Below the pieces are notes generated by a model. That model was not told the origin of the DNA, ran no database searches, and saw nothing but the letters and a program-made list of their open reading frames with translations. Shown piece by piece: positions 612 through 63,412 of a stretch of 64,000 nucleotides of DNA. Positions within the stretch are counted from its first letter, which is position 1. Every line of letters starts with the position of its first letter. A program made the translations under genes and the position numbers. The stretch is from Mytilus edulis (taxonomy: Eukaryota): the NCBI RefSeq assembly GCF_963676685.1, contig NC_092351.1, positions 25,482,001 through 25,546,000 on the forward strand, in the 5' to 3' direction.

Positions 612-1543
612 GTACAGCGAAAGGTTTCAGCAAACGACATAAAGAGCCTTCATACTGATGCAGAAAGACTGGCAAGATTATTTCGTAAACGGCATTGCAC
701 AGTCACCATTACTAATCTGTTGGATGTTAGTTAATTCAAATATATATTATTTTCTAGATCAAGATTGCATAACAATACATTTGCATTTACAAAATGATTT
801 TTAAGGTTTCAATTATTTCTATTATGGAGTAAAATTGTACAATGATATATGAACTAGACTTCTACTGGAGTATGTGATGTCGTAAGATGGATCCATATAT
901 CCACAGTGTATAACCACTTTATATTGTTTAATAGACGGGGTTTCGGAAATACATTATTTGTAAAAAGAATCAGAACTGTAAAAACACATTTTCTACGTTG
1001 ACACTTTTTTAAATACGAATTATATATAACTAAGAGATATCGACATACATACATATCAAAGATATATTGAGATAAACCTACAGTAAACCAGTATAGTGTT
1101 AATGAAATATCCAACCAGAGTAAGTTTTACACCATCAGCCTCCGTATGAGGTTTAATCTATATATAATTAACCCTTTTTCAAGGCAATATGTAGAAGACA
1201 GCCCTTTGTTTGGCTCCTGTTTGAACCTGATATTTCGTTTACATTATAATTTCTCTTTCAGAAATTCAATGAACTATTGGAAAGTTTGCCGGACTATAAA
1301 ATACATCTAAAAACTCCAGAGGTATCAACGTTCACTGAGAGATGTCTAGAAACTATATGGTTAATGTTAAACCAAGAACCGCCTATGTCATTAGAATGGC
1401 CTCAGCAAGGAGAAACATTTGATACCACATTGTATAAATATTACAACAGGAAAGGATTTAATGTGAACTTTCCTGTCTGGCCAGCAGTGTTAATGTATAA
1501 CAAAGGACCAGTACTGTGTAAAGGATTTGCTGTTCCCATGTAA
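612..1543 (+). CDS. G1: MIEAP/SPATA18-like protein, 5'-partial (last two exons)
   Basis: Exons 612-725 (VQRKVSANDIKSLHTDAERLARLFRKRHCTVTITNLLD) and 1262-1543, AG/GT bounded, phase 0. Last exon ERCLETIWLMLNQEPPMSLEWP...VWPAVLMYNKGPVLCKGFAVPM* matches the MIEAP C-terminal motif seen in the other paralogues. Confidence 0.85.
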
Positions 1544-2070
1544 CAACTGCTAGTACAATAAATACTTTGAATTGTTTTACATTTTCATATCGGGGCCTTT
1601 TATAGCTGACTATGCGGTATGGGCTTTGCTCATTGTTGAAGGCCGTACGTAATGTCTGGGTGATTTTGGTCTCTTCATACCACATCTTCTTTTTTATATT
1701 TATAACTCACTTTAACACTTGTATTTTGGCTCGTAAATCCAAGAAAAATAACTAAAATGTATCCCTTTATAACTACAAATTTAATTTAGCATCTGCTTTG
1801 TAAGAGTTCACGATTCAAATACCATCTGAGAAAAATGAAAAGTATTTCCTTATCGTCTGCTGCAATCTAATTTTAAAAATGAGTAGAGTAGAATGTTCAA
1901 ACTTGACCAAATAAAATTGATAGTGTTCCCGTTCAAATTGTTTTACCTTTTAAAATACATTGTATTTTATATATGTTATATATGGTTAATAAAATGACTG
2001 CTAGTTCTTTTCAAGCAATTTACCTTATTTGCAAATGTGAATCAAACAAATGAATGTGTTAAATATGTTC

Positions 2071-2354
2071 TTTTTATGCTCCATTTATGAGTATTGTGTT
2101 TTATGGTCTGTGCGTACGTCCGTCTGTTCGTCCGTTCGTCCGTCTGTCCTGCTTCAGGTTAAAGTTTTTGGTCGATGTAGTTTTTGATGAATTTGAAGTC
2201 CAATCAACTTGAATCTTAGTACACATGTTCCCTATGATATGATTTTTGTAATTTTAATGCCGCATTAGAGATTTCCCCCCATTTTCACGGTCCACTGAAC
2301 ATAGAAAATGATAGTGCGGATGCCCCATCCGTGTACTGGGGACACATTCTTGTT
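2071..2354 (+). mobile_element. Non-autonomous Helentron/HINE-like (DINE-1-like) element
   Basis: T-rich start, (GTCC/GTTC)n microsatellite, conserved core and 3' end ...gtactggggacacattcttgtt; matches three other copies in the window. Confidence 0.7.
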
Positions 2355-12904: not shown

Positions 12905-15900
12905 ATGGTAACTTTGGTAAAGGTGATATCTTATTTCATTGTTTATTAATATTAGAAAGTCCACACCATTTTGTTTTTGATTTGGTATATATTTGTACAA
13001 TATGAATTCATAATCAAATGAACGGTGAGTATTTTATATGCAAATGTACAAAATTTATTTTATTCATTGAACAAAATGTAGAGCATCATTTTTATTCAAT
13101 GGCATTTACAATTACACTTTGAATACATAATGAAAGATGTAATCGCATTGTACGATACAAAACGATACATTTGATGGTGAAGCATTAAACTGAGAAAGGT
13201 ATGCATCTTTTTGTATTTTCATTGCGTAGTAAAGCAGTAACAGTAGAGCAAGCACCTCATAGTTATGCGCATGTCTATCAAATCTATGAAACTGCAAATA
13301 AGTTGATCTCTATATTACACACTATAAGAACTTGTTGCGTCATTGTTATTTAACAATGTGCATAAACTGATCGCACAATTAGTAAAAATAGAAACGGGTA
13401 TTAAAATTGCTTTTTTCTAGATTTATAAAAAGAAGATGTGGTATGATTGCCAATGAGACAACTCTCCACAAGAGACCAAATGACACAGAAATGAACAACT
13501 GTAAGTCACCGTACGGCCCTCGAAAATAAGCAAAGTCCATACCGCATAGTCAGCTATAAAAGGCCCCGAAATGACAATGCAAAACAATTGAAACGAGAAA
13601 ACTAACGGCCTAATTTATGTACAAAATCAACGAAAAAACTTAAACAAACGACAACCACTGAGTAACAGGCTCCTGACTTGTGACAGGCACATACATACAG
13701 AATGTGGCGGGGTTAAACATGTAAGAGGGATCCCAACCCTCCCCCTAAGCCTACTAGGAAGGGTTACCCCTTAATATTTGAAAATAAGGGTTGTGTAAAA
13801 GGTAGACACATCAGGAGCTATATGACAGAAATCCCTAAATCATCTACAGTAAACTTTGTCTGATGTTAAACCTAAATTTCGTACGAATTTGTAAATTCAT
13901 TTGTTATAAATGCATATATATTATATAAAACATATCAAAGTACAGTATATGCCACACGTATACGGTATAGAGTACGATGTATTTTTGTGTCGTCTGGTTG
14001 TTGTGTTTAATACGCAGACAGAAAATGTGTTATTAATCAAACGATTTTGAACCGTCAAACTATCTAATTGGCAGATGGAAGTCACAATCTTTAGAGAATT
14101 GGAAGATTTTCTTGACCCCTTTCTGGACCCACAGAATGGACCTGTTCGTCCGGATAAAATGATGGCAGGCAGGGCATTAATTGCACTAGATGCATTGATC
14201 AAAAACATGCCTGGTGTTACAGAAGACAGGGTAAGTGATATAAAACGATGAAAAACAATTTGAGATTTTAATATGTAGATGAAATGAAAAGCGATTGATG
14301 AAATACTCTAAATGTAAAATTATCTGGATGTTTAGATATATGGAACTATTATTTTACGTTATTATGAACTGCATGCTCTAGTGTGAATTTTACATATGTG
14401 TTAATTTTTAATTTGTTATTACTTCTTGAATGTGTTGATAGACTAATGTGTTCTGACTATCTAAAATAGAATGTTAACGTTTATGAAGACAATATAACAT
14501 GACAAAAGTAGGTATATCCTCAATTCATGTGACAATTCTTATCTATTTCCAACCTGACCATTCATACAGGTGGAATCACTAAAGATCATGTTGCAAGAAG
14601 CAATGAGAGGACGCTGGACATCTATGGACATGAGAATAGATGACGCAGTAGATCAATTTAATGAAATCAAACGAATGGCATTTGATGAGGTAAATTTCAA
14701 GTTTGTTACAATTATGACAAGGGAACTACCATTTATCTTAGTTAAGGTAACAACAAATGGAAGTTTTAACAACCTTGATTGGCTATACAGCCCTTGCACG
14801 GTCGATAGTTAACGTAGATGGGGTGTCTTCCTTCGTGTTGGATTTGGAAACACCAGAAGACAAGGTCTAGATCTTTAATAGAATGTGCTAATTTTTAGAG
14901 TAGTATGTAATTCATGTGTAAGAACTTCCACTTCGATATAGAAAATGACATGTTTTATCATATTTCTGGTTGTATTTTAAATAAAAACAGAAAACTTTTG
15001 TTTAATCAATTTTTTTCCAACTTTGTCACATAAGGGGAGGCAACTCATATTATGCAAGGGCAGATTATGCAGATTAAGGTACTTTTACAATAGAATGTGT
15101 TAAGAATTTACCTATTTTATTATGTAGCGAGGAAAACGGGTCCGGTGATCACATTGTTTCTTTTTCTGTACTGAAAGCATACTATTAAAAAAGAGGGACG
15201 AAAGATACCAAAGGGACAGTCAAACTCATAAATCTAAAACAAACTGACAACGCCATGGCTAAAAATGAAAAAGACAAACAAACAACAGCTATCTTCAACA
15301 AACAACAAGCTATCTTTGCATATGTAATCTCAAAATTCTATGGTGTAGATTACGCTTTATTGCAGAAAATTGGGTTGTCGTCATGCATAATCTATACAAA
15401 ATTTGTCAATTTTGAACACCGTGAAGCGTGAAAATAAGCCCGGTGACTCATTCTGTTTTTTTTTTTTTGTTTTTTTTAAAGCATGATATAAACTACTAAC
15501 ATTTTGGCAAATTATTTGAAAAATCTATGGATTATTTTTAGACACTAAATCTACCTTAGGTGATCTAAGCTAAAATTAGTTAAATCATTTAAACTGATTC
15601 GAAAAGGTTAAACGCCTCCATTGCAAAATAAAAACGCCACAGAAAAAAGGATTATTCAAGATCTTTTTAATGAATTAATACACTCTTGTGTAGTACATCA
15701 TTGGTTTTCATCTTTCTCTTATTTAATACTAAATATAGTGCTGAAGATATATAAACTTCCTTAGTTAAAATACCTGAAACACAAATGACAGATAAGGTAC
15801 TTTTTCTGCATTTTCTACAATTCTGTCATTTCTACAGTTGTTATCTTTATTACAGCGTATATTGCATGACAGTAAACCACAGTATCTATACAGCTCTAAG

Positions 15901-18900
15901 TCCAAATCAGCAAATTATCAAATATCACCTCGACCACAGCCAAAACGACCGGCATATATTGACGGATTCACATTGAAAAATAAACCATCAGATAATGACG
16001 TTTTAAATGCTGAGGGAACCGGAAGTATTCACAATATGAATACGAGGATCAACAGGAACCCGGATGACCCTCTTAATAGAGAGTTTACGTTAGATGTTAT
16101 AAAGTCTAGCACAAAAATACCACCTCCAACAGGGCAGGACCTGGTTAACCGAAATACGCTGATAAAACAAGAGTTCAAAGACATCAAAAGCAGGTAATAT
16201 AAATAAAAAATTGCCTACTCCTTGCGTAGTTATGCTTTTTAAAGCGTGTTCCACTTAAGAAAACAGGTTTTATTTATATAATTTTTTATTTGTTATTTCA
16301 TCCTTTTTAATGTATTTGAACAGATTTCAAATTTACTACAGTTCTAATTTATTGTAAAGTCGAACACAAATTTCCTTGAACAAATTATTTATATGAGACA
16401 CTATCTTAAAGTGGCATTAAAATTTCTTGTCTAGAAATACCTCCAATTGTTATATTTTTTTAGATATCGCGTGTCCATTTTCCAGGTGAATATTCAGAAC
16501 ATGATAAAGAGAGAGGAAAAAATGCATACGTCATTGCAGTACAAGAGGATGGCCCAGAGGGGTAAACTGATCCTGCTACGCTTTTGGCACCTATCGGGTT
16601 ACTCTTGACATTAAACGGTTTTAGATGTGAATTAATGTATCTCAGCATAATTGAAAGTATCATGTAGGGACATCTTCATCCTACTTCTAATCTGACGAAA
16701 TAATAACAATTTTCCAGAAAAAATCAATATGTGCATTGTATTACAGGTATAGTGAACTCCGGATTCCTGCAACGGTCCCAGAAATTTCAACACGTTCCTA
16801 TATTCCATCTCAGGTGCTAACAAACAACCCAACCAAAATTGCTGATCTATTTACAAAACTTTTTGATGTTGAATGGGCTGATGCTTTTGAACAAGTCTGC
16901 AGAAATAGAATCGGAGTACCTGAAGTGAAGATAATTGTTGATTTAGCCGACATATTAAAGGCAAGTAAAGCGTATGTAAAAAAGATATTTATTAGGTTAA
17001 TATGACGTCAAATGTATTTTCAATCTTTTTTTCATTCCTGGCTTATAGTCAATTCCTGCTTTTTGTATTGCAGAAGAAATCTGTTACTGTGTATAAAATT
17101 AAGAATGTGGCATGATTTCCGAAGAGACATCTCTCTTCAAGATACCAAATGATGTAGACGTTAGCTACTTTATGTCACCGTACGACCTTAAACAATGAGG
17201 AAACCACATGCCATGTAGTAAGCTTTTAAGGGCCCCAAAATAACCATTTAAAAAAAATTAAAACGAAAACACTAAAGGCTTTATTTATGTATACACTGTT
17301 TTATGGGTTAATTGTGTCTTTTGGTTGTGTTCGTCATTGATATATATTCCACTTTAGGAGAAGACCGTATAAATGTGCTGTCGATTTTATACACAACTAT
17401 TTGGTACATGATGTGGGAAAAATAACCGTGACAACCAAAAAAAAACACCTTCAAGAAAATAAAATGGTCGATCCTTTCCTTGAATTCACAACCAATGACG
17501 AAGAAAAGAAGATACCTGTAATTGTTCAATTTCGAAAGAAACAAAACACATACTGTGTGTGTTTAATGACATGAAAATGTTGTGCAATGAAATCGTTGAG
17601 TGTTGAAATACATTTAGAAATAACTGCTGCTGTCGTCTCTCTTTCAGAAATCTTTTCAATATACCCGAGAAGAAGCAAGGAATTTGATTGACAGCATGGC
17701 ATTAAGAGTTCACGATACAATGGCTGTACCACCAGGACATACACCTTATACGGTAATTAGTTTTCAACAAAATCACATTTTCTAGTATTATTTACTTTTA
17801 TTGCGACAACTAAACAAAAAATAATGTTCGTAGACAGTATAAATACTGAAATGTGAGTGGGAAATATGTGGTTTATCTCTTGAAGTTTTTGAGTGGTTTT
17901 GTAGCTTTCTCATTGCTATCCCTCAAATTTATTTGTATTAACTTTATAAAAGAAAACATTTAACAACTTTTCCACTATTAAAGAGGGGAGAAATATACCA
18001 GAGGGACATTCGCTCTCATCTGTCGAACATAAACTGACAAAATACACGAAACACAGTATAGAAAATTAAAGACTGAACTGTTTCACTCATTACTAACATG
18101 AGAAATCAAATTCTGAAAGTAGCAATACTATTAGTATGTATTTTGTTTTAATGTTAATTCATTTAACACAGTTCCAAAAGCATACATGCATATAGCATCA
18201 AAACAGGCAAACTTTGAATTAAAAGTATGGTTATTTATTACATTTATAGGTTCGGTTAAAAGAGAGACATCATGATTACACCTTAAAGCGACATGCTAGA
18301 GAAATAGTGAAAGAAACCGCTGATTTAAGTCTTAATATCATAATTAAAGTAAGTTTATCAAATTAGGTGTTGTACCTGCACCAAGTCAGTATAGTAAAAT
18401 AGCAGTTGTTATCAAATAGTCCGTTTTTTTATATGTTGGCTTTTGTTTTGTATGTTGCTATCCAGTGTTCTGCTGTTGGAGGAGAATAAGTTTTGAACAC
18501 CTACTGTATATACAATGTATACATCAAATGTTCAAAGTACTAGTGTTCGAAGGTAAAGACAGAGCAGCGCTAAAACTAATAAACTAATAGTCATTATTAG
18601 TATAAAAAGAATACTAGTAACTAAATTATATATCCAGCATATTTATACAATAGAATATGTTATATAGGGTGTATATAATTAGTGATAATTATGGTAGAGC
18701 GGGCTGCACAGCTATCAAACTAGATATATTTTGCAGTCATTAGCAATATACTGATAAAAAAAAATCACAAAAATACTGAACTCCGATAAAAATTCAAAGC
18801 AGAAACGCCCTAATCAAATGACAAACACATCAGACAAATTGATAACGACCGTCATACGTTGGTAAAGGCATTTTCGTATGTAGAAAAGGATTGAACCTGG

Positions 18901-19684
18901 TTTTATAGCTAGCTATACCTCTAACCTGTATGACAGTCGATTGGAAAAAGGTAAGTGGGTTTAAAAAAAACACTGGCTCTAGGGGAAAATTCACCCATAC
19001 GTGTTACATCATATTTTAAAAATATTTCACTATTAATATATCATTTAATTCAGTCGCGTTATATCTGTTCATTTCCTGATATAAAAAAGCTATATATCAG
19101 AGGAAATAGAAAAAAATGTAAAAAAAAGAATCTTGAGTAAGTGAGTAAGGTCATACGTCCACCTAATTGATTTCTGAGCGTACCATGTCGAGCATCTTTG
19201 TTATATTCTGCAAAGCTTGTTTCCTTCCCATAATTCTAACCAATGAGGATAATGCAATACTTTATTTCTCCTCTATCTTTCATCGAATATTCGTAATAGT
19301 ATAAGGTAAGTGGTTAGAGTAACCAACAGTTTTAACATATGATTTAATCCATACTAAAACTATTTGCAGGACTTTGAGGACAGATATAACCCGCCAAGCT
19401 TTCGACATCATGTAATACAACAATATGATATCGATGAATACCAAAAACTAGACAAAGTAACCAGGTATCTTCAAAAATGTGTCGAGGTAACTTGGTATAT
19501 GAACGTACAGGATCCACCGATGGTACTTCTATGGCCGAACACAAATGAAAATGAAATATCATTAAACTGTTTCAGACATTTTACAAAATTTGGTAACAAA
19601 CTGGAACATGAAGTTTGGCCAGCTCTATTGATACACGATCAGGGTCCTGTAATCGTGAAAGGAGTTGCACAACTGAGATATTAA
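12905..19684 (+). CDS. G3: MIEAP-like protein, ~450 aa
   Basis: Tentative first exon 12905-12922 (MVTLVK; an alternative start is ATG 14075), then 14075-14230, 14570-14689, 15856(or 15838)-16193, 16747-16960 (GC donor), 17648-17752, 18250-18348, 19370-19684. Motifs NPTKIADLFTKLFDVEWADAFE and KCVEVTWYMNVQDPPMVLLWP...VWPALLIHDQGPVIVKGVAQLRY*. Confidence 0.85.
13427..13748 (+). repeat. Repeat family B copy
   Basis: Colinear with ~30110-30450. Confidence 0.8.
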
Positions 19685-28172: not shown

Positions 28173-28739
28173 TTCCATTTTCATAGAACATTTATTGCAT
28201 TGCCATTAAAAATGTGGGTTCTATTATTTAGCCATGTGTTCTGACAATACGTTGCATGTTTTTTCCATCGATGTGCATTTTAATTATTACAATCATATTT
28301 GAACAATTTTGATTTATTTATAGGATTTGAAAGGGTATAATACATAAATTCGGCAGCAATTCAACGACAGTTTTAACCCACAAACACCCTAATATCATCA
28401 TACAGTCTTCAATATATTTTCTTGTTAATTCGACCTGTTGATACTGTTTATAATGCTTTTTTGTTATTTTATATTAATATGGAACTTGTCTATATATCAG
28501 CTTTGATTATTTGGAATATCTTTTAATTTTCACTTACTACATTTGTATAAACTTCAAGATTTATCTGTATTATTAAAACTTTTTTTCAAAAGTGATAATT
28601 TTCGACGGGTTAAATATTTTGCAGTGGTGTCTTGCCATGGCTTTGTTTGGACTTGTTTGTTTGCTTTTTGGCCTTGAATGTTTGTCCCTAATATTTTATT
28701 AACTGCATTTACATTCAGATATCGCAGATTAAACTTATT

Positions 28740-38297: not shown

Positions 38298-41200
38298 ATG
38301 GAAGAAGATACTGTAGAAGATGAAGAAGACAGGAAATTCCAACAGGTACGTATAGTTATGAAAACACCGCAGTTATGAAAACATGGTTGTTTTATTCTGA
38401 TTTTAAACTTATCATCTAGGGATATAAAGGGTGTCGGATGAGATGCCGAACATTAAACTCCTTATATTCAATATTCAATTTAAACTTGTCGAGCATTTAA
38501 TGAAATAAAATTGTGTAATATGACATAAATTATATAACACTTAAAACACTGCTTCCAATTTTTTTTATTTTCCTTTTCAGCATTGCATGTTCTTAATGTC
38601 AGTGACATTTTTTTCATTACTTGCTTACTTATGATTAGTCCTTGGTATGCTATTTGGCACATAAGGCAAGGACAAGTTTCCTCCATTCTTCTCTGTTGTT
38701 TGCTTTTCTGTCCATTGTTCCCCAGGTATATCCTCTTTCCTTATTATTCATTTTCTATAGTGCATCTCCATGTGGTTTTTGGTCTTCCTCTTTTCACTTT
38801 TCCTTTTGGTGTCCATCTAAGTGCCACCTTGGTCATGTCTTCAGATGGTTTGCGTATACCATGACGGAGCCATCTCCATCTCTTTTGTAGCGACAAATTC
38901 TCCATGTCCTTGGTGTTTGTAGTCCAATATAGTTCTTGTTGTTGCGTATTTATTTGGCCAGACTACTTTCATTATCTTCATCAGACACACATGTGTTATG
39001 GAAGCTGACGAATCTTTTTGTATCTTTCTCAGTCATTCTCAAGCACTCTGAGCCATATAGGAGTACAGAGAATACACAACTGTATATAGTCTTAGCTTGG
39101 TTTTCTTTGTAAAGGCTGTTGCTTTCCAGATGTGGCCTAACCTAATTAATGTTGTTTTTTATTATTATTCATTTATTTGCAGCTAGAGGAGGAGTTTTGC
39201 AATTTAGAAACTTTTCTTCGGAAGTGTAAAAAACTTCTTAGATCGAAGATAACATATAAAATGTATCCAACCAAAACAGAAACAGAGGGCGCCATATCAA
39301 GTCTACAAACAATAATTAGTACCGATGAAGAAATAGAAAATGATGTATGTGGACTACATGGTTTCGTACACTNNNNNNNNNNNNNNNNNNNNNNNNNNNN
39401 NNNNNNNNNNNNNNNNNNNNNNNNNNNNNNNNNNNNNNNNNNNNNNNNNNNNNNNNNNNNNNNNNNNNNNNNNNNNNNNNNNNNNNNNNNNNNNNNNNNN
39501 NNNNNNNNNNNNNNNNNNNNNNNNNNNNNNNNNNNNNNNNNNNNNNNNNNNNNNNNNNNNNNNNNNNNNNNNNNNNNNNNNNNNNNNNNNNNNNNNNNNN
39601 NNNNNNNNNNNNNNNNNNNNNNNNNNNNNNNNNNNNNNCGGATGAAAGAACGAAAGAAAGATATTTTTACTTTGTTTCAAGTAATCTGATTATAATCCCA
39701 TGAAGTTAGATACTGAGGAATACTTTAATTATCTTTTTACAGGTTAAACTGGTACCTGAATTTCTGGGATTAGTGCTGAACAGAAAATGGAAACAAGTGA
39801 AGAAAACTGTTTTATCTGTCTGTATGGAGTTAGATGCTGCAGAGTGTAAATATCTTAAAGTATGTCAGTTTATACAAACATTATTTCGCATGTCGATCAT
39901 ATTTTATTCCTTATGTATTAAATAAGAGGTGAAACTAATAAATTTGAATAAATAAAGATGTAATTTGATTGATACACTCTTGGTTAGTTTATGTAATATA
40001 TAAAAATATTATGATATATTCCAGAGAGATACAGTAGAGTCCAAGTTGAACAAACCATCAAGTATAGAGCTTGCGAATTTTGATGTTTGGAAGGAGTCTG
40101 CATTATTACGATTTGGGTGAGAACTTTAATCTTTTTGTCTGATTCAGATTATGTACAGTATACGGTCTTGGCGATACTTACTTTAGTTTGATTCCATAAT
40201 CTGATACACTAGAATATCACATTACGGTTTCACAAATTTGTCTTAACACCTTTAATTGCTACTACAGTATCAGGCTGATCCAATGCATTTCAGGTATTTA
40301 ATCGTACTTTGCAGTCAGGCAATTATAACTGTATCTAATGAAATGTTTTCTTTAGAATGATAAATGAGCGCCTAAAAACTTGTATGATATACATGCACGA
40401 TAAACTTACGTTATTTACTGAAAGTAACTTTGTGAATATTTTCACCACTGCTTTCAGTATAGAACCTGAAGAAGTCTTGAAATACGACACTGAACTTGCG
40501 GAAGAATGCATTGATGAATCTTTACCTACACAAATGGCGAAACAATTTTGTGTTATTTACGACGTTAACTGGTCAGAAGCCTTCATTCAAGCGAAACAAC
40601 ATTTCGTCGACGACAAGGAAGACGAAGAAATAATAAAAGATATAGCAACACTAACACAGGTATAAATAAATCAAATTTACCAGAAATAAATTATTTTTTA
40701 CACTACTGGTTAATGCAAATATTAATCTTGTTATGTTTTTTTCCATGAATTTTTTCTCCTTTTTGCTTACAATTTTCCTTATACACATTATGAAATATCT
40801 TTCATGTCTGAATCTTATAATTTAAAGGGAACACACAAGATAATAGCCAAGTGGACTTAAATTAAATGGAAAATTACTTTTGTCCAAAATTTTTCCTATC
40901 AATTTTAATATTGCCAGTAAAACGACTTTGTAAACGAACCAAATTATAAAAATGTAAGATAATATACATTGTGTCAACATAATATGTAATCCTACCTTTA
41001 CAATATCTCTTTTTTGCAGCTTGTATTTGACTATTTTAAGATTAAGGTAACGAATCAGGTAAAACAAATGACAACTGTCATGACAAAAATAGTCACAGAA
41101 CCAATCATCGTCAAGCAGAAGTCCAGTAGAACACCTGCATCTGTAAGTTGTAGTTGGTATGTTATTATTTCTGCATATGACGTAGGTAGCAAAACATATA

Positions 41201-42883
41201 AAGATATCAAATCAAAGACGGACAGCTACAATCACCCAGTCAAAAAGGATAAAGCTAGTTTGAACATTTGAACAACTGACTTTGGCATTGAGGTATGAAT
41301 TTAATAGAGGATATATTTCCTATTTACGTTATTTTTCGACCCCTGCTAGTTTACACAACATACGTCGTGCAGACATTTTATAGAACTAACATTGGCAAGA
41401 TAAGGCTATGGTAACATACTATTTTGGGTCCTTTAAAGCTTGCTATGCGATATGGTCTTGCTCATTGTTAAAATCCGTACGTTGACTTATAGTTGCTACG
41501 CCATTTGATCTCTGGTGGAGATTTTCTCATTGGCAATCATACCACAAATTCTTATTTCAACACGGAATAAACTTTTATGACAGACATTGTTAACAGTGAA
41601 TAGGAAACATTACAGACCATTACACACGCAAAAAACAAACCAACGTCAAAAAAGTTATGATCTTTCGTTCGATTATTGTGACATATACATTTTAGCATCG
41701 ATCGATAATTATTTCCAATAAAGTTCAAAATAAAGATAAAATGAAATTATATTCTGACCGTTGAGAACTCAATCCCTGCTATTTTAACTTTTTGAACTAA
41801 TTTGTGTATATTTCAGACAACGAAGTCATTAAACACAACTGAAAAAGAATACAAAACAGTGTTACCATATGCTAGGTTGGCAGTAAGAGATACAATACGC
41901 TTCAGTCTTCCAGTACTCATGAAGGTAAAGTTCTGGGATAGTATGGTACAAATGTACATATTACAGTTTTGAACATTGATCTTTGTTTTTATAAAGTCTG
42001 TCTTTTTTACTATATAAACTAGAATAAAAAAATACAGATACTGTGGATTCATTATTATTCGTTGGATACCAATTATCGTGGCTTTCGTGGGTACTGTTGA
42101 ACCACGAAATTAAATGTTCAACGAATAACAAATTTTCTATAGGCTTGTATACAGACTTCAGCAAAACCTCGAAATTAAATATCCACGATCTTGCAAGTTT
42201 TCCCTAATCCACGAAAATTGGTACCCACGAAAATAAACGAATCCACAGTAAGTAATAAATTTATCCCATTGTGACCCGTAAAAAGATAGTTATTGATTTA
42301 AACTTTATTATGAGGAAACATTCAGTCTAAGATAATCTGATATAGATTTAAATGTTTTGAAATTTACAGAAACTTGTATTCATAAATTGGAACACATAAG
42401 ATCGAGGCATTCATATAGTATAACGACAGGATAAAAAAAAAGTATTTTTCTATGAAGCAGACATAAGTATAAAATGTATTGAATAAAAAACAGTTTGTGC
42501 GGGATCACCTTAAAACATTTAAATGGATTTAAAAAGGAACTTTTTTTATTTATTTATGACTCCGTTATCATTGATATAATCCGTGTTTTGTATTACCACA
42601 GGAATTTACAGCAACGCAGATTTCTCGACAGCTCAAACCGTATCTTAGCTTGGACAAAGTAAATAATTTTATTGAAAATTGTTCTCAATTTTCATGGAAT
42701 ATCAATGTGATGGAGACCCCTATGGTGCTTGTGTGGCCAACAGATGCAACTAAAGACAAATTATTTCATTATTTTAGATATTTTACAAAATTTGGAAATG
42801 ATTTTGACCATGGTGTATGGCCAGCTTTGTTATTAAATGAGGGTGGACCAACTATGGTTAGAGGTGTGGTGCAGCTGAAATAA
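38298..42883 (+). CDS. G6: MIEAP-like protein, ~377 aa, 8 coding exons
   Basis: Exons 38298-38345 (MEEDTVEDEEDRKFQQ), 39183-39344, 39743-39859, 40025-40116, 40458-40659, 41020-41142, 41817-41924, 42602-42883 (1134 nt). The N gap falls inside intron 2. Last exon FIENCSQFSWNINVMETPMVLVWP...VWPALLLNEGGPTMVRGVVQLK*. Confidence 0.87.
38617..39143 (-). mobile_element. 5'-truncated RTE-clade LINE fragment
   Basis: Frameshifted minus-strand peptide KTKLRLY/SCVFSVLLYGSECLRMTEKDTKRFVSFHNTC...VALRWTPKGKVKRGRPKTTWRCTIENE, typical of the RTE ORF C-terminus, with a (TAAG)n-like 3' tail. Lies in G6 intron 1. Confidence 0.82.
39373..39638. other. Assembly gap (266 N)
   Basis: Run of N within G6 intron 2; ORFs spanning it are artefacts. 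Confidence 0.99.
42041..42248. mobile_element. MITE with TA target duplication (Tc1/mariner-like)
   Basis: ta|ctgtggattc ... gaatccacag|ta, with internal ccacgaa/ttcgtgg repeats. Confidence 0.78.
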
Positions 42884-48193: not shown

Positions 48194-51100
48194 ATGTCAA
48201 AGGTAAGTCGACATGTAAATAATAATTGTTAATGGTTTCATAATCAAGATTTTTTGGGTGTTTTCAAAGTTGATAAATTTGCAATATTTTCACCTTTTAG
48301 AATGAAATAATCTAGTACAAAATCAGTATTTGATACACTTAAATTTCGAATTATTGTCTGAAATTGTCATTCTTTGTTATGAAAAGAATTCGATTAATTG
48401 AAATATGTTGGTCATAATTAAACCTACGTATAAACAATATACATTTAGATGCTTAACATTTTTAGTACTGTTAAAATGGTATATATGATGAGTAACGATA
48501 CTTAAGTAGAAGTAGTTGAGGTTTGAGTGGTGTTGCTTGCTTAGCTACATAAGGAGCAGCCGATCTCATTGTAAATGATAAGTTAATGACAAAAACACTC
48601 AGCAAAACGTTCTTCAGTTGTAAAAAAAAATCTTAAGCGTGCTGTATCTAATTCTATGGGATCATTAGATGTTGCCTCCAAACCTTATATCAATAAGGGG
48701 CGAGCATGATAGATATTGGACACTGCTTTCAAGTTCAGAAAGTAACTTTTGTTTGACATTCGTTTGATGTGTTTGAGCTTTTGATTTTGCGATTTGATAA
48801 GCTTTCCTTCTTGAATTTTCGTCAGAGTTCAGTATTTTTGTGATTTTACTTTTTGTTATCCATTCGTTTGGTGTGTTTGAGATTTAGATTTTGCCATTTG
48901 ATTAGGGACTTTCCGGTTGATTTTTCATCGGAGCTAGGTGTTTAAGTATATTTTTTTTTCCAAAAAGTGTGGCGACTTTTATTTTCCTGTTCCAGTAATG
49001 AATGTCTTAGCAGCAGCTTTGTGCCGATTTTTCAATATACCTTTTACTTTTACGACACATGGTGAAGTTCGTTTTACATTTTCGACATGTTATAATGTTT
49101 ATTGCTTTTTGTTCGAAGTAATATTAAAAGTATCACTGTGGCTTGAGAAAATGGTTAACAATTAAATAGCTGGTTAATTGTTTTCTTAAATGCTGGTGAG
49201 GTTCCAGGATTAATATACTGAATATGTGTACCTTTAATATGACATTCACTTTTCATTTTGCAATTTTAGTTACAGTTTTCCTTCTCAGTCCTGGACAGAT
49301 TTATTCACGATGTTCAGAAACCGGTTGCACATCCAACCTCTGGCGATGCTAAAAGGGCTTCCTCTGCGATTGACGACATCATAAATAATGTTCCACTGAT
49401 CGATGAATTAAATGTAAGATTAAATTACTTAATTTCTTTATTGAGCATTGTCAAGTAAAATTTACAAACAAATAAGTTAAACAAAGCATGAAACAAAATT
49501 TAAATATGCTACCATTAAGTAAAGAGAAGAAAAAAATGCTATTCAGTTAATATGAATTAAAAAGAATAAGTCAGCATGAATTAATATGTTCTCCTGGGCT
49601 GGAAACAATAATGATCTTATCCTTTTTTTTTAATGCCAGTCTGTCGAAATTTTACCATTGTTGGTTATGCTGCGTGAATCTCCGGAAAAAATAGTTTGAC
49701 ATGTTTCCAAATAGTTTGTAAAATAAATGTACCAAAACTCAAAGAAATTTCTTAAAATCTAAAGCCCAAAGAATCTTTGAATTACAAAAATATATTTCAA
49801 ACATGTATTGATACAACAAAATGTATGTCTGATTTTAATTTGGTACAAACACATATGATAGACAGAACATATATTGCACCCATTTTTGGATTTAAAGGGA
49901 TATAAAAAATGTTCCAAGCGATCTTACAAATCCTAGTCACTATGGCATTTTTATATGACTAAAAAACATCAATCAATTCAACAATCAATTCAACCCTCAT
50001 GACGCTTCACATTAACTTTATCAATAAAATTTAATATTTCAAAGGTGAAAGGCTTACGAGATCTTATCAAACTTGCAGAAAAGGGAAAGTTCACAGACAT
50101 GAAAAACAAAGCCAGTGAAGCTATTTCTGATTACCAGATAATTGAATCATTTTATAAGAAAAAGGTTCGTTTGTAGATTACAATGTTGTATTTCGCTAGT
50201 TTTTTTATGGAAAGTAGTACATGTAGATATTTTATAACGCAAAACAATACATTATACGATTTTTTTCAATCAAACGCATGTTGTTTGTCAATGTGTATTG
50301 TGATTTTAAATTAGTATTGAGACACTAAATTGTTATATGCAGACATTTAACAGACCTGCGCCTTTCCCCTAACTGTCGTTCTACATATATGATGAATGCA
50401 ATCAACATAGAGAAAAGATATTCTGTAATAAATGTGGTTGGATTTCCTTTACCTCCTGATTAGGCGCGGGTCTGCTAAATGTCTGCATATAACAATATGT
50501 AGCGACACGTCTATTAACCAAAGCACCACAGGACAAGAAAAATCAACTACAGTTCACCACACGACCTGCAAAAAAAACCCAATACATCATGCCGTTGAAT
50601 ACGCTATTGAAGGCTCCGAAAATCAAAAAGTCAATCAACTGATGAAATTAACGAAAAACAATTATGACAGGCGGCAAAAAACAACAACTACTGGACAACA
50701 GGCTCTTCCATTGAATGCAAAATGCTCTTACTAGCCGGGATTTTCTCCTTAGTTAAATGATTATATCAAAATACTACTAGTATTGTGTAAGTTTTTTAAC
50801 AAACACATATGTGTTTCTTTTGTTGTATAATGTGATTCAGAAACATATCCAGTAATTAAAAATAAATATTAGGGTATAATGAATGTTTTGTATTTTATGA
50901 TCAGAATAGAAAAACAACATTTAATTTTCATAAAGGATTTTGCAGGTTTTACCCACATCGGAAAGTATAGATTCAAATGATAAGGAAAAGCAACCAAAGT
51001 TGAAAGAGGTTACAGATTCATTGTAAGTGAATGTACCTCGTCTTTCATGTAGTATCAAAATAGTTTAGTTGATCGGAAACAAATGAACGGAAAAATTGTT

Positions 51101-54100
51101 CAATCTGAAGAAAAAAATAATAATTAAATTTTCTAATGATTTACTTGTACTCCAAACCTAAATTGAACCTGTCTTAACAGCTGAAATCTCATTATATTTA
51201 TTAAAAGAAGAGTGTTCTGTTTTTACGATGTTGATATTCGAGGATCAAACCTGTTTGTACTTTATACAAGTGTTGACTTTATTTCCAGACTGAACCCATC
51301 TTACAAGCTTATGGATAACTATACAGCAGATGATAGACCGCATGGTCAAGATTTGGTCAACAGCAGACTTCTGCATCAACACAATACCACAGAAATAAAC
51401 GAAAGGTATGAATAGGTGTACTCTTTTACAGTCTTAGATATAAGAAGATGTGGTATGAGTGCCAATGGCTATGAGCCAACTCGTTATCAAAATGGTCTTA
51501 ATTGTTTAAATTGTAAGTAAAAAAAGATAAGCAATATAACAGTATGACAAATTGCAACTTAAGTTTGATAAACATTACCGAAGATGGTTTTCATGTCGTG
51601 TTTAAAACATTATAGTTTGGGATAAATATCTAATTGCTTTCATCCAGAAGAGATCAAGAAGCCAGTTTTTCTATCCATAACCAGAATCCGATGATAACGG
51701 ACATATCTGATACCAACAGACCTACAAAGGTAGCAGAACAATTCTCTGCGCTGTATGACAATGAGTGGACAGACGCTTTTGATGCCATTGCGAGGCTGGA
51801 GGGAAAGAAGGCAAACATAGAAAAAGAAATCATTATTTATCTGGATGATGTTCTAAGGGTAGTTATTATTTTTCTCCATTTAAATTCAAATGTACTAATT
51901 CATGAGAAGGCTTTCTTTACAGTCGCAGGTGGATTGTCAGTCCAAATTGGCAATTGAAGCCCCGTATCTTGTTACTCGGTATTGACATAACTTAAAACAT
52001 ATAACTTGGATTGTTTTTAAATTTTGTATATTTCATTTAATTATACTTAAACAAAAGCAGTATCTTCTAATGGACAAATGGACAAATGAAATGCCACGGT
52101 TCTCAGCGTTTTATGTGTTTGTAGCTTCCCAAACTTTTGGTCTCAAGCGTCCTCATTATATGGGAAATTTACGGTATACATATTACTTTAGATAAGAATA
52201 GAAAATTATCGAAGAATCACAATGATTGAAAACAAGTTTAGAAAAAATGCCTGTGTATTTTTCCAAAATGTTTTTTCTTTGGAAGATTTGAAGTTTTATT
52301 TCTATTCAGTATTAGAACTGAAGATATATGACTAATAACGTGTTTATATGATATTGTTTTTCCTAGCTTGTATTGATGACTTTATATATTTTGTAGAACA
52401 TTTACGTGTATACAGTTAAACGAGTACCAGCACTGGTAGACAATATCGCACTACAATTGGAGCAGACGATGTTGGATCCAGTAAGCAGTACCAAAGAAAA
52501 AGTACGATTGTTTATTTTAAACATCCATAAATAAACTTAGACATTATAGTAAAAAAAACCTCAACAATTCACTTGAAAAAACTACAATGAATTTTCTGAG
52601 ACAGTTTTATTGCCATACATTACAACACATAATGCTGTTGACTACAAAGTGTGTATATGAATTTGAATAAGGACATCCCATAGAGTATGAAGGTCTAACT
52701 GAATCAAAAGGATATATTTCGTAGCGACTTTTTTCAACTTGCGTATTGGCGGAGGTACTAAGGGAATACGCTAAGAACAGTAAGATCAATCATGAGTAAT
52801 ACCTTGTTTCTTTGATAAATAAAAATAGTATCCGAGTTCATGGTATTCGGCAATGTGTTAAATCATTTTATGTACATGTATGTCCTGCTGTTTAAATTTA
52901 TCAATTTTTTTTTAACAAAAAACATTATATACATAAAACTGCATTTTGGTAAAAGTATATACATTTTGTAAGTAGTGCTGTGTACGGATTGATAGTTGAG
53001 TCTTAGATGCATGATTTTTTTATTAGTTGTTAGTGGCTTTGAACTAGCTGTCAGATAACTGCAAGTACTCTCAGATCTGTTCATTGTGTCTTTTTGTTTC
53101 GGGATGTATAAGTACCCGGCCACGTCCACTTGTATTTTTGTCCATCTGATGAGTTAAGCCTTTTTCAACTGATTTTTATAGTTCGTTCTTATGTTGTACT
53201 GTTATACCACTGTCCCAGGTTAGGGGGAGGGTTGGGATCCCGCTAACATGTTAAACCCCGCCACATTATTTATGTATGTGCCTGTCCCAAGTCAGGAGCC
53301 TGTAATTCAGTGGTTGTCGTTTGTTTATGTGTTACATATTTGTTTTTCGTTCATTTTTTATATAAATAAGTCCGTTAGTTTTCTCGTTTGAATTGTTTTA
53401 CATTGTCTTATCGGGGCCTTTTATAGTTGACTATGCGGTATGGGCTTTGCTCATTGTTGAAGGTCGTACGGTGGCCTATAGTTGTTAATTTCTGTGTCAT
53501 TTTGGTCTCTTGTGGACAATTGTCTCATTGGCAATCATACCACATCATCTTTTTTATACTGTATAAATGTACGCAGAAGGAAACAAAAGGGTATACACAT
53601 ACCAAAACAGGATCCAATAGAATTGAAGTAATTCACTGTGTACAAATCTGTTGGATTTCTTTATTTTAAGGTTACCAATCCGAGTGTGATACACAATAGT
53701 AAGTTTCAGCGGTATGCTAAGACCTGTGTCAAAGAGACAGCGAAATTGAGCATTCAAGCTCTGATTCAGGTAATGTAAATTACATAGGTGCCGCAAAGCT
53801 AACAAAAAATACCCCAAAAAAAAAGCTTATGCGCTCGTGACACATATATGTTTTATATATCGATATTAAATTCATTTCAAGAAATAACCATCAAGATTCC
53901 TACCTCAAGCTTTAACTAAAAACTAATATTAAAAAATAATCCGATGATTTTATTTGTTTTGTTTAAGTGTGTTTATTTTAAAGAGAAGATAATCATTCGA
54001 AACTTTCTTCGCCCTGAACATGCATGAACTATTTGCCACTGGACTTTAAGCAATCAATCAATCAAATCGTAACTGTTTAAAATATATAAGAATGTATATG

Positions 54101-54775
54101 TCACGTATTATTGACTACACATGCAATGAAGTAATTGGTAGATGATAAAATTTTATTGATGCTATTACGGTGCAAAGATGATGTGTTATTTTTACAGAAA
54201 GATAGAAATGTTAAAAATAGTATCCATTGACACCGAAACAACAAATGGATTGGAACAGAGAACTATATAAGCAAGACAGAATAACTTTTAATATGTCAAG
54301 CGAAAGATTGACACACAATGTATGATTGCAGGTTGTCTCAAAATTTGAAAACGTAATAAAATTTCAATCTCAATTCAATCTTTCTTGTAACGCAGGTTAA
54401 CAAATATGCAGCTGTTTTTGAAGTTTGGTGATAACATATTGATAGAAATAAAATTATAATAAATGTTTAAAATGTTTATGGTTATTTTAGGATTTCAAAA
54501 AGACAGAACTACGTCCAAGCCTTCAAAAATATCAAGACAATTTTAATGTGAATAAATATATGGACAAGTGTATAGAGATATGCTGGTTTATGAATGTTCT
54601 TGATCCCCCAATGGTACTGAAATGGCCCATGGAACACCAAAATGCAGAAGATCTAGTTGCAAATTTTAGACATTATACAAAAGCTGGAATTCAGTTGGAC
54701 TTTGCAGTTTGGCCTGCACTGCTGTTCTATGACCAAGGTCCTCTAGTTGTGAAAGGAGTGATGCAAATGAAATGA
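48194..54775 (+). CDS. G7: MIEAP-like protein, ~388 aa, 9 coding exons
   Basis: Exons 48194-48202 (MSK), 49270-49413, 50045-50164, 50946-51022, 51289-51405, 51648-51858, 52397-52501 (or 52480), 53671-53769, 54491-54775. Motifs NPMITDISDTNRPTKVAEQFSALYDNEWTDAFD and KCIEICWFMNVLDPPMVLKWP...VWPALLFYDQGPLVVKGVMQMK*. Confidence 0.88.
53021..53558 (-). repeat. Interspersed repeat family B, long copy in a G7 intron
   Basis: Reverse complement of 30108-30650 with few substitutions. Confidence 0.85.
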
Positions 54776-56280: not shown

Positions 56281-56933
56281 TTTTTATGCCCCACCTACGA
56301 TAGTAGAGGGGCATTATGTTTTCTGGTCTGTGCGTCCGTTCGTCCGTCTGTCCGTTCGTTCCTCCGTCTGTTCGTTCGTCCGTCTGTCCCGCTTCAAGTT
56401 AAAGTTTTTGGTCAAGGTAGTTTTTGATGGAGTTGAAGTTCAATCAACTTGAAACTTAGTACACATGTTCCTTATGATATGATCTTTCTAATTTTAAAGC
56501 CAAATTAAACTTTTGACCCCAATTTCACGGTTCACTGAACATAGAAAATGAAAGTGCATGTTTCAGGTTAAAGTTTTTGGTCAAGGTAGTTTTTGATGAA
56601 GTTGAAGTCCAATCAACTTGAAACTTAGTACACATGTTCCTTATGATATGATCTTTCTAATTTTAAAGCCAAATTAAACTTTTGACCCCAATTTCACGGT
56701 CCACTGAACATAGAAAATGAAAGTGCATGTTTCAGGTTAAAGTTTTTGGTCAAGGTAGTTTTTGATGAAGTTGAAGTCCAATCAACTTGAAACTTAGTAC
56801 ACATGTTCCCTATGATATTATCTTTCTAATTTCAATGCCTAATTATATTTTTATTCCAATTTCACGGTCCATTGGACATGGAAAATGATAGTGGGATTGG
56901 GGCATATTCGTGTACTTTGGACACATTCTTGTT
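56281..56933 (+). mobile_element. Helentron/HINE-like element with three tandem 169-bp core units
   Basis: Units start at 56393, 56562 and 56731 (ttca[a/g]gttaaagtttttggtcaaggtag...); termini as in the single-unit copies. Confidence 0.8.
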
Positions 56934-60600: not shown

Positions 60601-63412
60601 TCAAAAATGTATGAATATTGTTGATATGAACTTGTCACATTTCAATAATAGTTAAAAAAAAAATAATAAAAGGTTTTTAAATACGTTCATTTCTAGATTT
60701 AGACATACATTTAAAAAATACCATTGTGTAAATTTTAAGTTGCACTACCAATAACTTGCTGCTTAGAAGTAACAATGCATTTTTTGTTATTGTGTTTTTA
60801 AGTTGCTGTCTCATATGACATTACTTCAATGTCTCTTTTTATTCACATTGCAGTGATGTTGCTAAACCAGGTATGATTGAAAAAGCAAAGACTGGACAAC
60901 AGCGAGGAGGAACTAAACATGAAAATAGGATAGTTGGAAATCAATGGAGCGAATGGAAACCGACTGGAGTACAAGACTTGGATGCAATTCGTCAAATCCT
61001 AAAAGAAGCACTAGAAGGTGGTCAGACGTCAATGGAGGTTCTTCATCAAAAAGTGCAAGAGTTGATAGAAAGGTAAGGGTAGATAATTTTGGGATATATA
61101 AAATGAAAACAGATGTCAAAACATTTCTATTAAGTTCTAATAATTACATTAGAAGTATGTTTCATTATAATACGTTATTCTGATTGGCTAACTGCACATC
61201 ACGTGTTATTCCTTCAGCAGTTGCATTACTCAATAAAACTTATCATGCATGATAACACGAGGTCCGACAATAAAGTGCACAGGTGAATATGTAAATTTAA
61301 AAAAAAAATGATAAAATTCGTGCTTTCATGATCCTAGCTCAAAAATGTAATTATAAGTATTGAATGCTTCTTTTTGTAACTTTATACATTGTAGGGTTGT
61401 AAAAGCGTTGACCGTGCGCACATTTTTAGAATGAAGCACTTCCGCGCTTTTACAAAATGTACTTCGGTCAACGCTTTTACACTCCAATAAAGTTACAAAA
61501 AGAAGCATTCAATTTTTAAGTATACTATATTCATACTACCGACTTTTGACTCCTGGTAAAATAATAAATCAACTTGCAACCTATAGCTACTCTGTGGTAA
61601 GATATTTTGGTACTCGTTTAAGTAGGAGCAGCTTTAAAAAGTGAAAACAAGCTTGCAATCTGTTAAAAATTGGTCATATATAGAAATTATAGTACAGTTA
61701 TTTTTCTGCAAATTGTTACGAATAAAAGCTTGCTAATACTTCTGTTGGTTGCTCTTTGTATAAATTATTAGCGCTGGAGTCAAAAGTCGGTATCATGAAA
61801 ATAGTCTATTGCATACGCATTGTATAATTACGCTTCTGTAACGCCATACACATTATTACAACTTTAAATCGCTTTAAATCAAATCACAACGATTGGCCTA
61901 CATGTATGGGTGTGCTTGGTCTGAAACAATCATTTTAGAGTGAATCTGATGAATAACACTTGAGTAAAAAATGTCCAAGTATAACATAGTGATATAAATT
62001 GAAAACTAACAATTATGTCATTTTTAATTTTGTTTTGTATGTATGAAATTATTTTTTTAAATGTTTGTATTTACATGATTTATTACAGTTACACAATAAT
62101 TTTTTCGACTAACTTTCAATTAAAAGTAAGCAAAGAGATACGGAAATGATAGAACAATTACAACAGAAAACAGAAGAACTGTCAAGGTTACTGAAGGAAG
62201 AGAGAGAAAGAAACGAAAAACACAGAACGACACAAACACAAAACCAAATGACAGAAAAAGAGAAAGAAATAGCAGATCTTAGAAAAGAAACCACAGGACT
62301 TAAAGAGGAAACTGAAAAATTGAAACAGGAAGTGGAGACCTTGAGAACAAGGTAATCATGAAAATCATCATCGTCATCTTTTGAATGAAAACAAACATGG
62401 AATGTACATCAATTTTGACAAGACATAATGCTGAACAAAATTAAAGCCCAGTCTAACGTGTGTAATGCATTTACTCCCATTTAATTGGTCATTATTTCAA
62501 ATGTTTCTGTATTTAATAAACACAGAAATGTGCCAAGGATTTTTTGCTAGATTATGAAAATTTAAGACAATACTAAAAGTTATACAGTTTTACCTATTTT
62601 TACCACAGTACCAAAAATAAATCCAACAGGAGCCATAACATTGACCATCAGCTGTTTACAAGTTACTTATTTTTCTTATATTCAATCAATACTAACGTAT
62701 AATTATTTACATTTTATGCTATGCTATTATAAATCTGATTTATATATTTATTTAGTCTAAGTAAAGCTGCAGGAGATAAGTTGACTGATGGTAACCCTAC
62801 CATTACTGATCTTAGTGATCCAAATCGTCCCCAGAAACTCTGTGAAAAATTCAATAGCTTGTATGACAACTTATGGACTGATGCATTTGAACATGTTTTC
62901 AAAGATGAAAATAACGAGAAATTATCCGCCGCAAGACTAGTAGATATATTCAGGGTAAATACAGAGTATTGTTGTGTATAATTCCTACTAATTGCAATTT
63001 TACTTTTTTACCTTGAATTTCATTTTGACTTGTTATATCATTATTCAAATCTTTTTGTTTTATTCAAAATGTATCCATATGCTTCTGTTTTAAAAGTTTT
63101 CCTTTATACGCAAGATCTCAGTAAAACTCTGAATAAATAAATAATTTCAAATACGTGTCCAAAGTATATTTATAACAGATATTTTCTACATTTTAACGAT
63201 AAATCCCATGATAATTACATCAAAATAAGGTAAAAAATATAGCAACTGAATATAGAATATAAACAAACATAAATAATCATTTGAAACAGTCTCTATGATT
63301 AAAATTTCAGAAATGTTGGGAGTTTTGTCGTGAATGCGCTGATCGTCAGCTGGAAATGTTACAAGAAAAGTTTGTGCGACCAGAAGTTATCACGGAAGAA
63401 ATGAATAGACAG
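57684..63412 (+). CDS. G8: coiled-coil MIEAP-like protein, 3'-partial (continues beyond the window)
   Basis: Tentative first exon 57684-57728/57740 (MASSTEGAGPYKSTV), then 59449-59528, 60854-61072, 62127-62351 (heptad-rich E/K/Q coiled coil), 62756-62954 (LSKAAGDKLTDGNPTITDLSDPNRPQKLCEKFNSLYDNLWTDAFE), 63311-63412 (KCWEFCRECADRQLEML). The last two exons are missing from the window. Confidence 0.83.
59630..60277 (+). mobile_element. Two adjacent family A terminal fragments (~59630-59902 and ~60003-60277)
   Basis: Both match the reverse complement of ~5014-5290. Shorter relics at ~26-200, 4064-4140, 15188-15290, 17980-18075 and 37470-37512. Confidence 0.75.
60348..60768. mobile_element. MITE-like element with ~23-28 bp TIRs
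   Basis: agcagcaagttgttggtagtgca (60353-60375) versus tgcactaccaataacttgctgct (60741-60763), one mismatch. Confidence 0.65.
61359..61513. repeat. Long nested inverted repeat (fold-back)
   Basis: Perfect 27-bp arms 61359-61385/61487-61513 enclosing perfect 17-bp arms 61398-61414/61465-61481. Confidence 0.85.
61524..61805. mobile_element. MITE-like element with ~30 bp imperfect TIRs
   Basis: actatattcatactaccgacttttgactcc ... ggagtcaaaagtcggtatcatgaaaatagt. Confidence 0.65.

Follow-up and report, generated by a model that had tools for sequence, protein, structure and literature searches.

We report that a 64-kb stretch of the blue mussel genome (Mytilus edulis, C8:25,482,001-25,546,000; genome 1.37 Gb, about 32% guanine plus cytosine), referred to below as the window, is almost certainly a segment of the largest cluster on C8 of genes carrying the MIEAP domain (PF16026), and that the eight old paralogues within it, which represent two or more subfamilies, have stayed intact, are conserved among Mytilus species and are transcribed at least in part. 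The best overall explanation, in which we place slightly less than even confidence, is that of a diverged but intact MIEAP cluster whose proteins dock onto HSPA12, an atypical Hsp70. Although the array is genuine, old and conserved, and is expressed at least in part, it is nothing unusual for a bivalve, and both the array and the expansion to which it belongs are already known, because they are covered by RefSeq and UniProt annotation and by Regan et al. (2021). The new lead is the link to HSPA12, a prediction that structural modelling suggests.

Results

Exon families and gene count

An all-against-all comparison of stop-to-stop open frames resolved two clean exon families with seven members each. 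The first consists of MIEAP terminal exons, which share an invariant C, W, M-x-L-x-WP, VWPA and G at 27-37% identity to the first sequence, and all seven match PF16026 (30.6-55.9 bits; Pfam cut-off 27). The second, named here after its NRP/LYDxxW motifs, clusters as one family and matches the start of the same profile. Seven exons of each kind had been proposed in a sequence-only reading of this DNA, and every one of them was recovered. A relaxed comparison added two short middle exons between the NRP and the terminal exons, and the MIEAP domain is therefore split across four exons. The members of the two families are as follows (window coordinates).

1250-1540, plus strand: MIEAP terminal exon
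9033-9359, plus strand: MIEAP terminal exon
19358-19681, plus strand: MIEAP terminal exon
27882-28169, plus strand: MIEAP terminal exon
31703-32005, minus strand: MIEAP terminal exon
42575-42880, plus strand: MIEAP terminal exon
54491-54772, plus strand: MIEAP terminal exon
7197-7466, plus strand: NRP/LYDxxW exon
16691-17002, plus strand: NRP/LYDxxW exon
25393-25626, plus strand: NRP/LYDxxW exon
33613-33870, minus strand: NRP/LYDxxW exon
40342-40662, plus strand: NRP/LYDxxW exon
51634-51954, plus strand: NRP/LYDxxW exon
62739-62978, plus strand: NRP/LYDxxW exon

Pairing of these exons gives eight genes per 64 kb, namely G1 with its 3' end only, G2 to G7 complete, and G8 with its 3' end beyond the window. 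The earlier count of at least eight intact genes is thus right as to number, but only six lie complete inside the window, since G1 and G8 are cut by its ends. Its description of a tandem array likewise captures the clustering of the paralogues and misses the inversion of G5, which lies on the minus strand, tail-to-tail with G4 and head-to-head with G6; the array is therefore not strictly head-to-tail, and the word tandem needs correcting. About 2.8 kb (36373-39174) separates the first large coding exons of G5 and G6, and a bidirectional promoter region may be common to both genes.

Gene models

Complete models of G2, G4, G5 and G6 were built with a spliced aligner against near-identical or paralogous database proteins. 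Each has seven coding exons, GT-AG sites, intron phases 0,0,2,0,0,0 and no internal stop. In searches and folding, database proteins took the place of the joined models: P0163 for G2 (identical) and P0158 for G5 (366/367). The models, together with the one assembly gap that touches them, are listed below.

G1, 3' end only, 612..1543, plus strand: candidate M2 exon at about 612-731 (open frame only); stop codon 1541-1543; terminal exon 55.9 bits; remainder upstream of the window
G2, 7 exons, 440 aa, plus strand: 4568-4765, 5813-6007, 6474-6700, 7247-7445, 7884-7991, 8270-8386, 9084-9362
G3 (14051..19684), plus strand: MIEAP-domain exons 16823-16960, 17648-17752, 18265-18348, 19379-19684
G4 (23500..28434), 7 exons, 479 aa, plus strand: 23500-23664, 24143-24268, 24572-25011, 25410-25620, 26801-26905, 27482-27583, 27882-28172
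G5 (31700..36373), 7 exons, minus strand: 36373-36212, 35683-35564, 35050-34935, 33820-33625, 33400-33278, 32630-32526, 31981-31700
G6 (39174..42883), 7 exons, plus strand: 39174-39365, 39743-39859, 40025-40116, 40458-40659, 41020-41142, 41817-41924, 42602-42883
Assembly gap (N), 39373..39638, no strand: inside G6 intron 1
G7 (49270..54775), plus strand: MIEAP-domain exons 51646-51858, 52397-52501, 53671-53769, 54491-54775
G8, 5' part (60873..63412), plus strand: candidate helical/coiled-coil exons 60873-61076 and 62146-62355; NRP exon 62739-62978; M1 candidate at about 63299-63412

The spliced translation of G2 equals P0163 (XP_071125514.1, M. edulis) over 440/440 residues, with PF16026 spanning residues 233-435, and that of G5 is identical at 366/367 residues to P0158 (XP_071125517.1, M. 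edulis), its first four or so codons falling on an upstream exon that was not located. An additional short upstream ATG exon, also not located, belongs to G4, which was modelled on the paralogous transcript-derived protein P0181 and whose 3' untranslated region (3'UTR) extends to at least 28434. G6 shares 317/371 residues with P0170 (M. coruscus) and 315/371 with P0007 (M. californianus), and its terminal exon scores 30.6 bits. The assembly gap in G6 lies between the exon 1 donor (GT at 39366) and the exon 2 acceptor (AG at 39741-39742), and residues 14-78 of P0170 align before it and 78-149 after it, so that the N-terminal alignment is unbroken; the gap is therefore intronic, hides no coding residues and leaves the frame unaffected. 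Exon 5 of G5 (33400-33278) is missing from isoform X2 of the M. galloprovincialis orthologue (P0178, 330 aa), at a cost of 41 residues inside the MIEAP domain.

Exons E4-E7 form an open frame both in G3, with GT/GC-AG splice sites and a terminal exon of 47.2 bits, and in G7, with GT-AG sites and a terminal exon of 40.1 bits. A profile search gave weak but collinear candidates for E1 and E2 in both genes, at E-values of 1.3-1.7 in G3 (14051-14248 and 14558-14809) and of 0.016 and 0.0015 in G7 (49270-49455 and 50003-50173). The NRP exon of G8 groups with the other six and the remaining G8 pieces are open frames only; a terminal-exon match just outside the window (C8:25547268-25547480) is assigned to G8 by position. 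The absence of internal stops and frameshifts, asserted earlier for the whole array, holds for the full G2, G4, G5 and G6 models and for the MIEAP-domain exons of G3 and G7.

Family extent, age and selection

Searched with a terminal-exon profile, a representative library returned 1386 clusters (50% identity), of which 910 had E<=1e-10. In the M. edulis genome there are at least 86 MIEAP matches, 74 of which are on C8, and the local cluster, the largest, comprises at least 21 terminal exons over C8:25.317-25.697 Mb, in agreement with the suspicion that the array runs past the window. The best match in the genome is at C4:83,802,807-83,807,024 (99.3 bits, with a second piece covering profile positions 1-45); this locus is probably the canonical SPATA18 orthologue, on a chromosome other than that of the expansion.

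Divergence among the window paralogues is as deep as had been claimed, with identities of 27-37% in the terminal exon and 21-45% in the MIEAP domain. A tree of 112 MIEAP domains places G3-G7 together in a single clade (98 in the Shimodaira-Hasegawa-like approximate likelihood ratio test) whose named members come from Mytilus only, and G2 beside proteins of Crassostrea, Saccostrea and Pinctada. The array therefore mixes subfamilies that predate the split between mussels and oysters, and the duplicates are old, as the earlier reading held. One-to-one orthology of the window genes with SPATA18 was considered and rejected, given clades confined to bivalves, in a tree without vertebrate sequences, and the better match at C4:83.80 Mb.

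Three to five of the species M. edulis, M. galloprovincialis, M. trossulus, M. californianus and M. coruscus are represented among the proteins retrieved for G2, G5 and G6, at 81-100% identity. G5 has orthologues in the last four of these species, and its linker exon E3 diverges fastest, with 61% identity to M. californianus compared with 87-96% in the other exons; in G6 the divergence is greatest in exons 1, 5 and 6. Nucleotide identity among the window paralogues is 51% at codon position 1, 58% at position 2 and 38% at position 3, with about 28% expected at random, a pattern which, as judged from sequence comparison, is the mark of long selection on the protein. Purifying selection, which the earlier reading had inferred, is supported by this pattern, by the intact frames and by the one-to-one Mytilus counterparts of G2, G5 and G6 in three to five species.

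What the earlier reading took to be a lineage-specific expansion is bivalve-wide and published: Regan et al. assigned Mieap to an orthogroup (OG24) with 53.1 genes per bivalve species and 0.6 in other molluscs, alongside an Hsp70 orthogroup with 68.1 and 4.4, respectively, and both orthogroups underwent duplications in the bivalve ancestor (PMC8382680). Proteins of G2, G5 and G6 are likewise annotated already, in up to five Mytilus species, and the retrieved window proteins carry the UniProt name 'Mitochondria-eating protein C-terminal domain-containing protein' and the RefSeq label uncharacterized.

Transcription of G4

The check at the level of reads covered one gene, G4 (region 22800-28799). 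Fourteen small runs contain roughly one in four of the words from the G4/G5 region, and in runs X1 and X4 the depth lies on the G4 exons and not on the introns, high-copy repeats excepted. One X1 contig (record 1) joins E2 to E3, and another (record 4, 1127 nt) runs from E3 to E4, continues through 210 nt that are exactly the rest of E4 plus E5 and E6, and ends with E7 and the 3'UTR to 28434; X4 record 14 matches E1 exactly (23500-23664) and adds 73 nt of an upstream exon. The introns of G4 are covered by the DNA run X18, and the joined form is therefore RNA. G4 is thus spliced exactly as modelled in RNA-like contigs from two organisms, and the mapping of RNA to junctions that the earlier reading had recommended agrees, for this gene, with the model. 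Among the variants listed between runs, at least five are synonymous and at least nine non-synonymous, which is a hint only, and seven of the nine non-synonymous ones fall in E3.

It could be argued that the array consists mostly of decaying duplicates or gene-prediction artefacts without function, a view that we regard as very improbable and largely refuted. Several observations do weigh on that side: high-copy repeats crowd the introns and spacers; for G3, G7 and G8, paralogue templates recovered no 5' exons and a profile gave weak matches at best; and the raw RNA run X21 has almost no reads on G4, which counts against our own reading as well. Decay is, however, difficult to reconcile with frames of roughly 370-480 codons that stay intact, with conserved splice phases, at such low paralogue identity, with Mytilus counterparts of G2, G5 and G6 and a codon pattern indicative of selection on the protein, or with the spliced contigs of G4.

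Protein architecture

The AlphaFold2 model of the G5 protein P0158 (mean predicted local distance difference test score, pLDDT, 83) resolves into a compact four-helix bundle (residues 1-104, exons 1-2), a disordered segment (residues 104-156, exon 3) and the MIEAP domain (residues 157-371), in which long helices are followed by a small beta domain. G2, G4, G5 and G6 share a layout in which exons 3-7 encode a fast-evolving linker and a MIEAP domain of about 215 residues. A bundle of about 100 residues is encoded by exons 1-2 in G4-G6 and probably in G3 and G7 as well, and exons 1-2 of G2 gave no match to the four-helix bundle profile. Full-length G2 (57.1 bits) and G5 (56.3 bits) cover PF16026 profile positions 1-193 of 195, and in all models the domain ends 0-5 residues short of the stop codon. 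A Pfam match to MIEAP, the check that the earlier reading had named, was thus obtained above cut-off for all seven terminal exons and for both full-length proteins. As a side observation, MIEAP C-terminal matches open two longer frames of 310 and 319 aa (L009:975-1904 and L012:4702-5658, both on the minus strand), which continue for about 230 residues beyond the point where the protein normally stops; no Pfam family matches this extension, which may reflect a variant architecture or intron read-through.

Searches for other likenesses returned little. Pfam scans of the full-length proteins matched MIEAP and no other family, and the N-terminal bundle matched generic four-helix bundles only (Z about 8). 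Foldseek found no significant match in the PDB for the full P0158 model or for the domain-only model, and in the protein atlas the MIEAP domain reached chance-level scores (0.80, plant GIL1_IRKI_C family) and the bundle had no match. The description of the genes as MIEAP/SPATA18-like is accordingly correct in that they carry a true PF16026 domain, but the likeness is confined to that C-terminal domain and the N-terminal half differs.

A role like that of vertebrate Mieap is the main rival to our reading, although it is compatible with HSPA12 binding: the hydrophobic C-terminal domain would bind cardiolipin or related phospholipids and the hydrophilic N-terminal half would drive condensates in or at mitochondria, with paralogues tuning quality control to hypoxia, heat and infection. 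We consider this possible but unlikely. In its favour, MIEAP is the sole Pfam family matched, over its whole length, and work with deletion mutants of the human protein points to the structured C-terminal region as the part that concentrates Mieap in mitochondrial condensates, and as a possible mediator of its interaction with cardiolipin-related lipids (PMC10845071). The N-terminal half of the human protein, moreover, is hydrophilic and disordered (PMC10845071), and a disordered linker precedes the domain in the mussel proteins too; Regan et al. themselves link the expansion to coping with damage inside cells (PMC8382680). Against it, the N-terminal half of the mussel proteins is predicted to fold into a four-helix bundle and not into coiled coils flanked by intrinsically disordered regions (IDRs), and the probable true SPATA18 orthologue (C4:83.80 Mb, 99 bits) lies elsewhere. 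A lipid role would also leave unexplained why the most conserved surface of the domain coincides with its predicted HSPA12 interface.

A predicted interface with HSPA12

An HSPA12 gene of four coding exons (C8:25,349,026-25,353,963, plus strand) sits within the same MIEAP cluster, at a distance of about 130 kb upstream of the window. It matches P0224 ('heat shock 70 kDa protein 12B-like') at 99-100% in three of four exon alignments and at 78% in the fourth. Just upstream of it, on the opposite strand, is a MIEAP-type gene (L014/L015). Three of the 15 HSPA12 clusters on C8 lie within 20 kb of a MIEAP cluster, where 0.5 would be expected (P about 0.014). It should be noted that a genome search with PF00012 recovered classical Hsp70 genes and missed HSPA12 genes.

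When P0224 was co-folded with residues 150-371 of P0158, three runs scored 0.66, 0.66 and 0.67, and the best control reached 0.04; at least 90% of the contacts are shared between runs, and the pLDDT of the partner is at least 83. The pass mark is attained by 51 of 78 solved complexes and two of 108 mismatched pairs, and among eukaryotes by 39 of 65 solved pairs and two of 126 unrelated pairs. Aligned to solved Hsp70 nucleotide-binding domains (NBDs), the HSPA12 contacts in the predicted complex (47-51, 83, 294, 315-324 and 350-355) fall on lobes IB and IIB, the site that known exchange factors occupy in the GrpE, BAG and HspBP1 complexes. On the MIEAP side the predicted contacts involve the LYDNxW helix and the beta domain around V350, and these residues are more conserved than the remaining domain (0.58 versus 0.40, p=0.0006).

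The domain itself may resemble GrpE, which we regard as a weak lead and not as a fold assignment. The domain-only MIEAP model (P0109; pLDDT 90, predicted template-modelling score 0.83) retrieves GrpE structures at Foldseek ranks 2-4, 7-9 and 13, and VIA-align places GrpE at Z 5.6, 5.5 and 4.7 over the whole model.

From these models we propose that the MIEAP domain would dock on the NBD of HSPA12-type atypical Hsp70s and, once docked, may bridge lobes IB and IIB in the manner of GrpE-type nucleotide-exchange factors, and that the variable N-terminal bundle and linker would provide each paralogue with its own client, location or regulation. The bivalve Mieap and HSPA12 expansions would then represent one matched stress-chaperone repertoire. 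That MIEAP proteins are HSPA12 partners docking in an exchange-factor-like way is the most likely mechanism, yet we advance it tentatively, as somewhat less than probable, and we infer the binding, the exchange-factor-like mode and the division of labour among paralogues alike from predicted structures. A wider proposal, according to which the MIEAP domain would be an unrecognised GrpE-like module that binds Hsp70 NBDs and serves as exchange factor or adaptor for HSPA12 across animals, with the two bivalve expansions as a single co-evolving repertoire and vertebrate SPATA18 acting via HSPA12A/B, appears unlikely.

A number of points weigh against HSPA12 docking. Co-folding was performed on a single pair, without alignments and without a canonical Hsp70 as specificity control, and a pass can reflect the model's memory of the GrpE-DnaK complex and does not specify which paralogue binds. 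The GrpE hits are weak and non-significant (E 0.5-1.6), the VIA-align Z scores, at a root-mean-square deviation of 6-10 A, are low enough for a common helical arrangement to account for them, and Pfam scans detected neither GrpE nor any other co-chaperone family in the sequence. Conservation on the HSPA12 side of the interface does not exceed that of the remaining protein (p=0.69). As to genome organization, the window contains no HSPA12 exon, the majority of the best-scoring HSPA12 matches fall on chromosomes that carry few MIEAP genes or none, and neither seven long MIEAP proteins nor two extended MIEAP open reading frames revealed a fusion of Hsp70 with MIEAP.

In a further alternative, the genes would form a diversified repertoire for stress or immunity, their MIEAP domain would bind another partner, neither HSPA12 nor lipid, and the co-folding pass would be a false positive. 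About 2-5% of unrelated pairs attain the mark, as do seven of 44 blind neighbouring-gene pairs. Bivalve defence repertoires typically feature large and old tandem families whose linkers evolve fast (PMC8382680), and linker exon E3 is both the least conserved exon of G5 and the site of most of the non-synonymous G4 variants listed. We nevertheless judge this alternative fairly improbable, as the score of 0.66 exceeds the reported false-pass range (0.34-0.59), the three runs agree, and the predicted contacts fall on the canonical exchange-factor site and on the conserved motifs of the family.

Repeats in the window

High-copy interspersed repeats occupy the introns and 3' flank of G4 (26000-26400, 27000-27200, 27600-27800 and 28400-28800), with a summed depth of 10^5-10^6 in the DNA run, and are abundant in RNA-like runs too. 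A repeated element with a conserved short open frame recurs in introns and spacers of several genes; this frame has no credible Pfam match, and the intergenic and intronic open reading frames of the window returned no credible family match.

44641-44953: intergenic tandem repeat, 78 bp x 4 copies, 98% matches, open on both strands as a 26-aa repeat
56393-56893: intergenic tandem repeat, 169 bp x 3 copies
4993-5274, minus strand: repeated element
15123-15337, minus strand: repeated element
32818-33113, plus strand: repeated element
59645-60298, plus strand: repeated element

Discussion

HSPA12 is the largest chaperone expansion of bivalves, and no co-factor for it is described in the literature that we searched, which likewise contains no link between Mieap/SPATA18 and HSPA12. 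What the MIEAP domain does biochemically is a matter not settled for the human protein either. Because the predicted interface specifies residues on each partner, both questions become simple to assay through binding and nucleotide release. If the HSPA12 link is true, it would explain the joint expansion of the two families in animals that live with the stress of heat, hypoxia and infection.

SPATA18 is essentially single-copy in vertebrates. The mussel genes have in common with vertebrate SPATA18/Mieap a full-length C-terminal PF16026 match and a preceding disordered region; the window genes score 30-60 bits, whereas the C4 locus, at 99 bits, is the likelier true orthologue. Human Mieap is p53-inducible and its N-terminal half consists of two coiled coils flanked by four IDRs (PMC10845071), in contrast to the four-helix bundle predicted for the mussel proteins. 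Compared with GrpE and GrpEL1, the MIEAP domain as modelled may have a similar layout, in which long helices and a helical bundle are joined by a small beta domain at the C-terminus, and a similar docking on NBD lobes IB and IIB is predicted; it differs in having no sequence similarity to them, in structural scores that stay below significance, and in its predicted partner, which is HSPA12 and not a canonical Hsp70.

With OG24 of Regan et al. the window shares both the family and the phenomenon; that paper offers counts and trees, without gene structure, architecture or a partner, and handles the Hsp70 and Mieap expansions as separate families (PMC8382680). In the Pacific oyster, HSPA12 accounts for 89 of 113 Hsp70 genes, 61 of 107 mapped Hsp70 genes are on one chromosome, and expression is highest in labial palp and gill (PMC11268181); in a mussel, MIEAP-domain transcripts are gill-enriched (PMC5549309). 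HSPA12 and MIEAP are distinct protein families; both are large, tandem, concentrated on one chromosome, linked to stress and expressed in the gill (PMC11268181).

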